NCBI RefSeq assembly: GCF_039654945.1
Contig: NW_027361724.1
Span: forward strand, 6,138,001-6,202,000
Length of the DNA stretch: 64,000 bases
From: Dendrobates tinctorius
Taxonomy: Eukaryota
Reading direction: 5' to 3'
Both the position numbers and the translations under genes were made by a program. Positions 8,639 through 23,556 of the stretch are shown here, in pieces (the first letter of the stretch is position 1; the number at the start of each line of letters is the position of its first letter). A model generated the notes under the pieces. It was not told the origin of the DNA. It saw only the letters and a program-made list of their open reading frames with translations, and made no database searches.

Positions 8639-11600
8639 TTAGATGTCTGTAGGGGAGCGGCAACAACATGTAAGCACGCTGGCAGCCCTGGATAATCCAC
8701 GCCGGCAGGATGATAAGATCCGGCGGAAGATGGAACCTATGAGAATAGAAGTAAATGCAATGTAAGTGATGGGACTCCATACAACATGATACTTCTGTGG
8801 GGTCACAGTGGCCAGACAGCTGAGGAATCTCATCACACAGAGGTCAAGGATCATCGTCAACCATCATACATGTGATAATCCCATCACTGACAGATGACAC
8901 ATGAATTCTTCTCACTGACCGACATCACACAACATGGACATGATTCTCAATCTCACCTCTTCTTCTTTTCCCCTTTTTTACATTTTCTTGGCTTTCTTGC
9001 TCTGCATTCGGATTTATTACAGAATTTCTTATCTCAATATTTGATGCTTGGGTACACTCTGGATGGGACTTTGAATTCTCATTGTTCATCGTGATGGTAG
9101 CGATGGTGCAGAGCTAAATAAGGGAAAAAATAAGATATGAAATACTTTTTTTTACTTTGAGATGTCTTTTTTTTACATATTCTGGATTTATTGGTCATAT
9201 ATTCACTTTAGAAAGCCTTTCAGAGGATGACGTAAAATTTTGGAAGTCAAGGTCCTTGTCCTCACTTGTGTCCTCTTCATTCTCTGAGACCATAGGCATG
9301 TCTCTAGTAGCGTGATCTACAAGACATAGGTAATGAAATGTTACGAGAGGTTGTGGATATAGCACAGTCACAATTCATCCGCGAACCTGATGTCACATAT
9401 TAAGGAAGACGAGACAAACAGCATCTTAGTCTAGATGATGTCTCCTTCTACTTACTGATAAAGAGTCTGGTGTCCACATCTGACAAAAGATGAGGAATAT
9501 ACATTGGCTTCTGATTTAGAAGATTGTCAAAATCTAATTTTTTCACGAATGGATGATCCTTAATCTCAAATGCTCCACCTGGAAAAAAAAAAAAAATTGA
9601 TGAGGACATTGTCAGAAACTGCTCGATATCTCAACAGTTTATCCTAATCTGAACTAATGACGTAACTGGGCCAACATGAAGGAAATAGAAAGAAAGTCAC
9701 AGTATGGAGAACTAGAAATAGGCGAGCAGAAAGAGAAGTGCTGACCCTCATGGACATGAACGATTTGTCCTCAGTGTAATAAGTAAATATTAATACTATT
9801 ATATCTGTTACCTGTCCCAAGTCTTTGCTCAGGATTTTTTTGGAGCAGCTCAGTGATGAGGTTCTTAGCCTTACGGGGTGGATGGCGTTTGTGATTCCAA
9901 GGTATTTTTGCTGTTATATAGAAAGTTACAGAAAATAAAACGTTTGTATTGGACTGTAAGATGCAGCAAAGGAAATAACTAAACCAATGTAACCAGTCAA
10001 AGCAAAGATTGGATCATTCTACTTACCCATGACAATCAATCTTTTAAGCTCAGTTATGAAATCCACATCAAATGGTAAAGATCCCACCAGGAATTCATGG
10101 AGGATGATACCCATTGACCACCAGTCAACAGGTCTTCCGTAGTCTTTCTTCATGATGACCTCTGGGGCCATGTAATGCAGGGTACCACAATTCTAGAAAC
10201 CAACAGAATATCCAGATGAGAGGTGATGAAACTCATTATTAAGACAAGTTCTCACCATTAAATACACAGTGACAGAATATCAAATAGAAGTGGAGAAGTT
10301 CTCCAGAAATGAAGAACGTAGAGAAGAGACAATAGAGGTGAGATTTGTAAAGAACAAGCTAAGTTCCAGTAAGTGATGCTAACCTCACGGTCCTTGAACT
10401 CTCTGGAGATGTCCTTCGCTGATTGCTTATAGGTGTTGGTTTTTGGTATCATGATACCAATTTTTGAAAGCCCAAAATCAGTGACTTTAATGTGCCCAGC
10501 AGTTGTAATCAGGAGGCTGTGAAAGAGAAGAAGGTTTTAGGCTCACAGATCGTGTGATCATAAATAATAACTCCCCTCTTTATTACACTATAGGGGGCAC
10601 TTACTTCTGCGGTTTCAGGTTTCGGTGCACCACACCATAGCTGTGCAGGTATTCCACTGCAAGAACTGTTTCTGCAAAGTACATGCGGGCCAAGGGGATA
10701 GATAAATGGCCCCTGGTTCTTAGAAGGGACGCACAGTCTCCACCTATAGAAGAAAGGAAATATGAGCGGTGAGGGGTTTATAGAGCAGATCACCAAGATG
10801 TATCATGAGAAGTGAGCTGAGACATCGGAGCAGGAGAGAATATATACAGATATAATGCATATATAGTGCACAGAATATTGGTCTGAGGTCACGGTGAAAT
10901 GTCGTCCATATACAGTGATGCCACAACTGGTCTACAGCTGGAGATACAGACATGCTCAGTGCGGACATACAGGGACATCACACATCAATGACTTTCCTTA
11001 ATATCTACAGTAAATGCTGGGTGGGGATGCAACCATCCTCGTGGACAAGTCCTATCAATATGAGTCATAATAAGATGTCCGCAGACATAGGCTGAATATA
11101 ATATATGTACATGTCCTACCTCCGACATACTCCATGACCATGCACAGGTGAGATCTAGTAGGGAAGGAGCAGAGCATGGAGGCCACAAAGGGACAATCAG
11201 CGAAGGTCATGATGTCCCTCTCCAGAAAGGCTGCGTCCACATCTTCTTCAGTTTCCAGGTTCTTCTTCGCCATTTTCTTCATAGTGAAGATCTGCTGTGA
11301 GTGTTTGTGCTGCACTAAGTAGGCAGCCCTGGAGAGAAGAAGAATCCATGGTTAATAATGAGCCCTATAAAAATCCGGCTATAGAAGTCCTTGGACAAGA
11401 CAGTGATGTGGACTCAGATCATGTCCCTATGATAACACTGCATGGCAGAGCACAGAGGCTGAAGCCTTGTTATAGGGAACCCTGAGAAATGTGGATAATG
11501 CCAACAAAAATCTCACCCAAAACATCCACCGCTGATCAGTTTAGATGTCTCGAAGTCGCTCATATGCGGCTTTCTCGCCGGGATCAATGATTCAATCAAG

Positions 11601-23556: not shown

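Follow-up and report, generated by a model that had tools for sequence, protein, structure and literature searches.

An HRN-bearing, PDZ-less MAST-like gene of Dendrobates tinctorius, a probable pseudokinase in an expanded frog family

A 64,000-nt stretch of Dendrobates tinctorius DNA from contig NW_027361724.1 (hereafter the window, whose positions are used throughout) carries on its minus strand a 24-exon gene for a short, strongly diverged relative of the MAST kinases. Its protein has no PDZ domain and bears asparagine where the HRD motif of its relatives holds the catalytic aspartate. The reading that we favour, with some reserve and from the sequence evidence set out below, is that of a selectively kept pseudokinase, or very weak kinase, working beside active paralogues. 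The original prediction for this locus had proposed a probable pseudokinase with ongoing or recent function, and the analysis supports this: the HRN motif was confirmed, it is unique to this lineage within its family, and the ratio of non-synonymous to synonymous divergence (dN/dS) between orthologues, counted over 18 substitutions, is significantly below 1.

The HRN catalytic loop and selection on the protein

The catalytic loop of the window protein reads HRNLKPQN, and the beta3 lysine, the alphaC glutamate, the catalytic asparagine, the DFG aspartate, the APE motif and the activation-loop threonine are retained. This gives a catalytic pattern of K-E-N-N-D, as against K-E-D-N-D in 117 of 123 proteins of the frog family described below and in all canonical MASTs checked. 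Loss of a catalytic residue was seen in about 5% of family members. The DFG aspartate is missing from four family proteins (alignment tally, n = 123), namely P0271 of Phyllobates terribilis (NFG), P0281 of Ranitomeya imitator (NFG), P0287 (SFG) and P0292 (H).

Asparagine at the HRD position was found in only one of the 123 family proteins, P0202, and the HRD aspartate was near-invariant in a 58-sequence alignment too. P0202 is the D. tinctorius orthologue, at locus L005; its kinase domain is 99% identical to that of the window, its gene is collinear with the window and the introns are 98.4% identical. That the window might be this D. tinctorius sequence itself was rejected, given that intron difference and the unequal cassette counts (six here, seven there). 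The P0202 model omits exons 1 and 2. For transcript evidence, contigs from four public runs belonging to two studies were placed on positions 8250-14249 at a likeness of at least 97%. The asparagine codon is present in transcripts of all four runs and in P0202, showing that HRN is real and predates the split of the genomes of the two loci. An assembly error was considered as the source of HRN and rejected, as the identical base occurs in contigs of the four runs and in the D. tinctorius assembly.

A retrogene of the same lineage (locus L001, see below) keeps HRD, the VAIK alanine and the valine of the glycine-rich loop. When amino-acid changes were polarised with nine outgroups, 24 were assigned to the parent lineage and 14 to the retrogene. 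The parent-lineage changes include glycine-loop valine to alanine, VAIK alanine to threonine and HRD aspartate to asparagine, and nearly all of them are common to both orthologues.

Over 548 codons outside the linker cassettes, the orthologues differ by nine synonymous and nine non-synonymous substitutions (dS 0.025, dN 0.007, ratio 0.28), where the neutral expectation is 78% non-synonymous (binomial P = 0.009). Within the kinase domain five synonymous and two non-synonymous differences were counted (ratio 0.11, P = 0.007). Divergence between the orthologues was 1.65% in introns and 1.1% in the coding sequence. The orthologue ratio of 0.28 is thus not near 1, the value that the original prediction had associated with a young pseudogene, and these small counts point to purifying selection after the catalytic change.

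Gene structure, transcripts and the linker cassette array

The gene was rebuilt by hand on the minus strand as 24 exons with a coding sequence running from 23556 to 8639 (2,646 coding bases, 881 codons plus TAA). All 23 introns, likewise read by hand on this strand, are of the form GT..AG with a pyrimidine tract. The start ATG lies at 23556, with an in-frame TGA upstream at 23580-23578, and the stop TAA at 8641-8639. Single exons match Pkinase and DUF1908 in Pfam, the latter (PF08926) at profile positions 140-215 with 38.9 bits, where the cut-off is 27.5. The earlier claim of 24 in-phase exons with about 881 stop-free codons was borne out, as the same limits were recovered and the retrocopy and the contig junctions agree with them. 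The features of the gene, with the evidence for each, are listed here.

23332-23757, minus strand: exon 1, comprising the 5' untranslated region (UTR; at least 23757-23557) and coding sequence 23556-23332; 75 codons, DUF1908 helical core; GTAAGT donor
20964-21065, minus strand: exon 2, end of the DUF1908 core, 34 codons; AG/GT sites, match to L001:9522-9626, alignment with 1V9V/2M9X
20686-20785, minus strand: cassette 1 exon A, 100 nt; splice reading and retrocopy alignment
19408-19475, minus strand: cassette 1 exon B, 68 nt; splice reading and retrocopy alignment
18648-18747, minus strand: cassette 2 exon A; splice reading
18042-18109, minus strand: cassette 2 exon B; splice reading
17243-17342, minus strand: cassette 3 exon A; splice reading
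16641-16708, minus strand: cassette 3 exon B; splice reading
15851-15941, minus strand: cassette 4 exon A, 91 nt, with an in-frame 9-nt deletion; splice reading
15241-15308, minus strand: cassette 4 exon B; splice reading
14383-14482, minus strand: cassette 5 exon A; splice reading
13806-13873, minus strand: cassette 5 exon B; splice reading, A-to-B join in contigs
13062-13161, minus strand: cassette 6 exon A; splice reading, B-to-A join as a loose contig end at 13161
12501-12568, minus strand: cassette 6 exon B; splice reading, joint 11602/12501 in four of four runs
11517-11602, minus strand: exon 15, start of the kinase domain, glycine-rich loop SGGCFG; splice reading and contigs
11120-11328, minus strand: exon 16, beta3 lysine (FTMKK) and alphaC glutamate (FLERD); Pfam and contigs
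10605-10743, minus strand: exon 17, catalytic loop HRNLKPQ(N), asparagine codon AAC at 10621-10619; contigs without mismatch, same residue in P0202
10517-10604, minus strand: intron 17/18, 88 nt; kept in the deepest contigs, giving KPQK and then a stop
10384-10516, minus strand: exon 18, DFG and MAST-type activation-loop insertion; splice reading and contigs
10027-10192, minus strand: exon 19, APE and DWW motif; Pfam and contigs
9812-9910, minus strand: exon 20, kinase C-lobe; splice reading and contigs
9456-9578, minus strand: exon 21, end of the kinase domain and start of the AGC tail; splice reading and contigs
9207-9316, minus strand: exon 22, AGC tail with hydrophobic motif FQNFTS; weak donor GTGAAT used, joint 9113/9207 in four of four runs
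8957-9113, minus strand: exon 23, low-complexity stretch ending in KKGKRRR; splice reading and contigs
8313-8736, minus strand: exon 24, conserved tail, TAA at 8641-8639, 3' UTR of about 325 nt and AATAAA at 8336-8331; retrocopy homology stops at about 8312, followed by poly(A)

In a scan of 1.84 billion representative proteins, the nearest to the window protein was the D. tinctorius RefSeq model P0001, which is sited at L001. This locus (L001:9098-11620; GCA_039654945.1, JAYMGB010000020.1) holds an intronless D. tinctorius copy whose stretch L001:9098-11607 matches the window gene exon by exon at about 94% nucleotide identity and breaks exactly at the predicted junctions; the exon 1 region 23757-23331, for instance, matches L001:9098-9524 at 93.9%. 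Its 663-codon frame is intact, with two cassettes and HRD kept, and its 3' end carries AATAAA followed by a poly(A) run. An intronless copy with these 3' features is a processed retrogene, recording a spliced germline mRNA of the lineage of the window gene. The transcript limits that follow from it are a 5' UTR reaching at least 23757 and a 3' end at about 8312-8315, after the AATAAA at 8336-8331. The RefSeq model P0001 takes only the 3' half of the retrogene, spliced onto unrelated downstream exons.

The original prediction had proposed looking for spliced RNA at the predicted junctions, and joints are present in the public contigs for every intron of the 8250-14249 stretch. All ten of its predicted introns (CT..AC on the plus strand) are joined, at 8736/8957, 9113/9207, 9316/9456, 9578/9812, 9910/10027, 10192/10384, 10516/10605, 10743/11120, 11328/11517 and 11602/12501. 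The contigs also join cassettes A-to-B, B-to-A and B6-to-exon-15, and their depth is zero in most intronic bins. Contigs that retain intron 17/18 carry a 4-nt deletion at 10599 in the source organism. One further contig (10716-11069) extends from intron 16 into exon 17 and ends in sequence foreign to the window. At 11069, 10744 and 10517, contigs are joined to two 29-mers that matched neither the window nor loci L001-L005. These odd patterns, with the read-through of intron 17/18 and the low depth over exons 15-16, could stem from a promoter inside the gene, from an alternative exon lying far off, or from paralogue reads mixed in during assembly.

The much expanded linker that had been noted proved to be a tandem array at 12.2-20.8 kb, in which a unit of about 1.4 kb with a 100-nt exon A and a 68-nt exon B occurs six times. 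Together A and B make 56 codons, so that the cassette preserves the frame. There are six cassettes in the window, seven in the D. tinctorius orthologue (all seven open, with intact splice sites), two in the retrocopy and a single one in most paralogues. The six-copy linker is 333 residues long and carries a net charge of -78, proline making up 18% of it and serine plus threonine 21%, and the cassette is homologous to the pre-kinase linker of MAST4 (32% identity, MAST4 residues 460-515). Between copies, the cassette exons are 92-95% conserved, as against 86% for the unit introns, and the ratio of non-synonymous to synonymous proportions (pN/pS) is 0.94. Judged from these comparisons, frame, splice sites and composition look constrained, but not the exact sequence.

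Within the array, a mini-exon ATGGCGCCTGATTGTCCG followed by GT was seen upstream of cassette exon A at 18851-18868 and at homologous sites in other units. The RefSeq model P0202 begins with the mini-exon peptide MAPDCP inside the cassette array, and an extra exon of that model matches unit-intron sequence (window about 19680-19742). The gene may have a second start here, or the MAPDCP mini-exon may be a product of faulty annotation. Also found in the unit introns are 39-bp tandem repeats, with 4-5 copies at 12038-12214 and 14758-14956.

Intron 1 holds a 40-bp minisatellite of about 53 copies with 95% matches (21107-23221; Tandem Repeats Finder), which recurs at the matching place in the intron at D. 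tinctorius L005 (about 6755-8434). Three repeats of 40 bp make 40 codons, and the minisatellite is for that reason open in all three minus-strand frames. The long open reading frames (ORFs) at 21-23.3 kb (347-738 aa) were accordingly rejected as coding, being the minisatellite open in every frame. A 25-nt tandem motif (CACAGATGGTCCTCCATTATGACAT-like) lies in the 5' UTR or promoter region of exon 1 (window 23640-23760), of which the retrocopy (L001:9011-9210) has more copies than the window. Upstream of the gene are three tandem arrays (25959-27373 and 29946-31084; 30-bp x 19, 52-bp x 16 and 25-bp x 44), sitting in a stretch with strong G-over-C skew. Positions 38007-38144 are 138 consecutive N, either a gap or masked sequence.

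A family of short MAST-like proteins in frogs

Searching 1.84 billion proteins with exon 16 gave 781 matches, the best 150 of which are MAST or MAST-like. The window protein is about 50% identical to MAST4 over 425 residues, and its closest relatives are all frog proteins that bear the NCBI names "MAST1/2/3/4-like". A word search with the retrogene product placed more than 100 distinct 90%-identity clusters among the matches listed, from Ranitomeya variabilis (about 40), R. imitator, D. tinctorius, Phyllobates terribilis and Anomaloglossus baeobatrachus. Beyond Dendrobatoidea, the matches listed include four clusters of Engystomops pustulosus and one of Rhinoderma darwinii, and a family confined to Dendrobatoidea was rejected on account of these members. 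No bufonid, hylid, ranid or Xenopus member was among the matches listed (the best 120 per list), which does not establish absence from those groups.

The family forms one clade, with support of 100/100 in one tree and 100 in a Shimodaira-Hasegawa-like approximate likelihood-ratio test (SH-aLRT) in another. Its stem, of length 0.43, leaves the polytomy of vertebrate MAST1-4, and its internal branches are about 10 times as long as canonical MAST branches. In a tree rooted on invertebrate MASTs, the window gene groups with vertebrate MAST1-4; P0202 is nearest to it, followed by the L001 retrocopy and then by Ranitomeya P0201. The suggestion that the gene is a MAST paralogue specific to its lineage and evolving fast, within an amphibian family that has expanded, is upheld by this fully supported clade, its long stem and the more than 100 clusters listed, from five dendrobatoid species together with Engystomops and Rhinoderma. 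Mostly disrupted paralogues, which the original prediction had named as a sign of a young pseudogene, were not what the analysis showed.

Three further paralogue loci span 11-19 kb and so contain introns, from which it follows that DNA duplication was the main route of the family's expansion; retroposition contributed at least once. As to its origin, the best canonical BLAST matches are to MAST4, linker homology was found solely with the MAST4 clade, and family members share chromosome-scale contigs with MAST4 in two species. The kinase tree gave a polytomy and no sister group among MAST1-4. Taken together, these comparisons suggest MAST4 as the likeliest source of the family.

In the literature we found no paper on a short MAST-like family or linking MAST genes with poison frogs, and amphibians go unmentioned in a 2025 review of MAST evolution. 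For the relatives there are only automatic RefSeq models, and several of these (P0001, P0202, P0209) are fragmented or fused. P0209 (D. tinctorius, 1,099 aa) has the misleading name "ribosomal protein S6 kinase 2 alpha-like" and is probably two adjacent family members fused by annotation.

The limits of the window protein are those of its family. In paralogues P0018 and P0083, residue 1 corresponds to the methionine at window 23556, and the stop position is also common. The first 140 or so positions of the DUF1908 profile are missing from the window protein, so that the predicted start part-way into DUF1908 stands for the Pfam profile. It does not stand for the domain as solved: the N-terminal 109 residues (of the 87%-identical retrocopy) match the solved DUF1908 domains 1V9V (E = 2.5e-17) and 2M9X (5.5e-16) near full length, spanning essentially the whole helical domain, which indicates that a folded DUF1908 core is kept.

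At the other end, the PDZ profile PF00595 was found in none of the more than 100 family proteins listed, and canonical MASTs from the same lists have it. A tblastn search with MAST1-4 and family members gave no MAST-like exons, neither upstream DUF1908 nor downstream PDZ, outside 8.6-23.6 kb in the 64-kb window. A PDZ-less end two short exons past the AGC tail was therefore seen as predicted; what did not hold is the idea that this copy had been rebuilt, since the whole family has this architecture. The alternative that downstream PDZ exons replace the 8736-8639 exon found no support, with no such exons in the window and the transcript ending at 8312-8315. The exon 24 tail is conserved in 63 family proteins and is homologous to the basic motif that stands straight after PDZ in MAST4 and MAST2. 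This homology implies that the family arose by losing PDZ together with everything beyond that motif.

Mouse Mast2 needs its DUF for activity in vitro but can do without PDZ (PMC12732324), which makes the parts kept by the frog family, with the DUF and the kinase domain, a minimal catalytic module. An AlphaFold2 model of the orthologue (P0202 residues 160-612) gave a predicted local distance difference test score (pLDDT) of 85-97 for the kinase core. For the C-terminal tail the pLDDT was about 30, which speaks neither for nor against docking of the tail as a pseudosubstrate.

Proposed origin, alternatives and comparison with known systems

The family arose from a canonical MAST gene that lost its PDZ domain, its long C-terminus and the N-terminal 350 or so residues. 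What remained was the helical core of DUF1908, the kinase domain with its AGC tail, and the basic motif found after PDZ in canonical MASTs. The descendants grew in number until each genome held dozens; DNA duplication produced most of them, and retroposition at least one. Two events followed in the window gene's lineage: tandem amplification of the 1.4-kb two-exon linker unit, to six copies here and seven in D. tinctorius, and a burst of substitutions at otherwise invariant catalytic positions. Purifying selection would have acted on the protein since then. ATP binding is most likely retained, because the beta3 lysine, the alphaC glutamate, the catalytic-loop asparagine and the DFG aspartate are kept; phosphate transfer would not be efficient. 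The protein may serve as a silent partner or competitor of active paralogues, its own HRD retrogene included, for substrates or regulators. Regulation would act through its conserved, RRxS-rich C-terminal tail, with the linker as a spacer whose length varies. In its fullest form, the proposal would be that of an HRN pseudokinase with a variable cassette number that regulates active paralogues, its own retrogene among them, inside an undescribed, fast-diversifying family of minimal MASTs; we offer this tentatively and regard it as doubtful in all its parts together.

A rival account, which we consider rather unlikely, is that the window gene, one copy in a family that evolves by birth and death, was disabled not long ago, with D-to-N as the first hit, splicing now failing and the frame open for lack of time. 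Several observations favour such decay or otherwise weigh against a selected function. The 88-nt intron 17/18 is read through in the deepest contigs of all four runs, with a premature stop after KPQK, and this form is the majority in the contigs; contig depth over exons 15-16 is about 1/10 of that over exons 17-24, and full-length coding mRNA may be a minor product in the tissues sampled. At 6 of 8 fixed exonic differences between the orthologue loci the contigs bear the D. tinctorius alleles, so that the source of the RNA is that lineage, not the individual that supplied the window. The selection test comprises only 18 substitutions, between two genomes that may be very close relatives, and an open frame is weakly informative at an orthologue divergence estimated at about 1%. 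The dN/dS of the window gene against the retrogene is 0.62 (bootstrap 0.42-0.90), and pN/pS among cassette copies is 0.94. HRN is accompanied by two other changes at invariant positions, in a family of which about 5% is without one catalytic residue. Decay sits poorly, however, with the under-representation of non-synonymous changes between the two HRN orthologues (P = 0.009; kinase domain 0.007) and with a coding sequence that differs less than the introns (1.1% against 1.65%). The predicted junctions of the 8250-14249 stretch are all used in the contigs, and the 24 exons here and the 26 in D. tinctorius, including 26 cassette exons, all keep frame and splice sites.

The protein might instead be an active kinase still, with the asparagine at HRD leaving enough activity or another residue serving as base. 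This would suit the retention of all ATP- and metal-binding residues, of APE and of the activation-loop threonine, as well as the signs of purifying selection on the kinase domain, and HER3, which is also HRN, retains weak phosphotransfer. We nevertheless hold it to be improbable, given that 122 of 123 family members keep the HRD aspartate, which is near-invariant in the 58 aligned sequences, and that the VAIK alanine and the glycine-loop valine changed on the same branch. Changing the HRD aspartate of AGC kinases to asparagine or alanine cuts kcat by two to three orders of magnitude. Hardly credible at all is the view that there is no gene here and that the exons reflect chance, an annotation artefact or a processed pseudogene. 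ORF tracks do miss the gene, and the long ORFs of the region are minisatellite artefacts; but the introns, of which 23 are present where a processed pseudogene would have none, the junctions used in RNA contigs and seen in the retrocopy, and the syntenic orthologue rule this view out. A pseudokinase or very weak kinase under selection is thus the reading that we retain.

MAST kinases are poorly understood and disease-linked, and are normally encoded by four slowly evolving genes; here there are dozens of short, fast copies, a natural series for probing the roles of the DUF core and of the basic post-PDZ motif. An HRD retrogene and an HRN parent, with an orthologue for each step, make a closely dated kinase/pseudokinase pair. 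If the proposal in its fullest form is true, this natural pair was born within a few million years, and would be the first switch of that sort in the AGC family to be caught in the act. The cassette array, with 1, 2, 6 or 7 copies, offers a clean change of exon-cassette copy number between close relatives. RefSeq models of the family are fragmented, fused or begin within the cassette array, and need curation.

Among known systems, the closest in plan are the canonical MASTs, especially MAST4 (P0100 of Anomaloglossus, P0166 of Ranitomeya), which have in common with the window protein the DUF1908 core, the AGC kinase domain with its activation-loop insertion, and the AGC tail with hydrophobic motif. 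Canonical MAST4 further shares the acidic pre-kinase linker exons and the basic RRRSxF(K/R)(K/R) post-PDZ motif. Compared with it, the window protein is shorter by about 350 residues at the N-terminus and by more than 1,000 at the C-terminus, and has no PDZ domain; its kinase domain is about 50% identical, its branches are about 10 times longer, and it has HRN for HRD and a six-fold linker cassette.

MASTL/Greatwall is likewise a kinase of the MAST lineage without PDZ (PMC12024977), as in the frog family. However, MASTL is without DUF1908 and its kinase domain is split by an insertion of about 500 residues, whereas the frog family groups with MAST1-4 and keeps the DUF core. HER3/ErbB3 has HRN with the ATP-binding residues kept, and acts as an allosteric partner of active relatives. 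It is likened to the window gene in mechanism only. It belongs to an unrelated group, the receptor tyrosine kinases.

The nearest likenesses are among the frogs themselves. Dendrobatoid RefSeq models of the MAST1/2/3/4-like kind have the same start and the same tail as the window gene, and are also without PDZ. The D. tinctorius orthologue P0202 at L005 is syntenic and has HRN like the window gene, with 7 cassettes against 6. The processed retrogene at L001 has about 94% nucleotide identity and the same UTRs, but it is intronless, carries two cassettes and has HRD.

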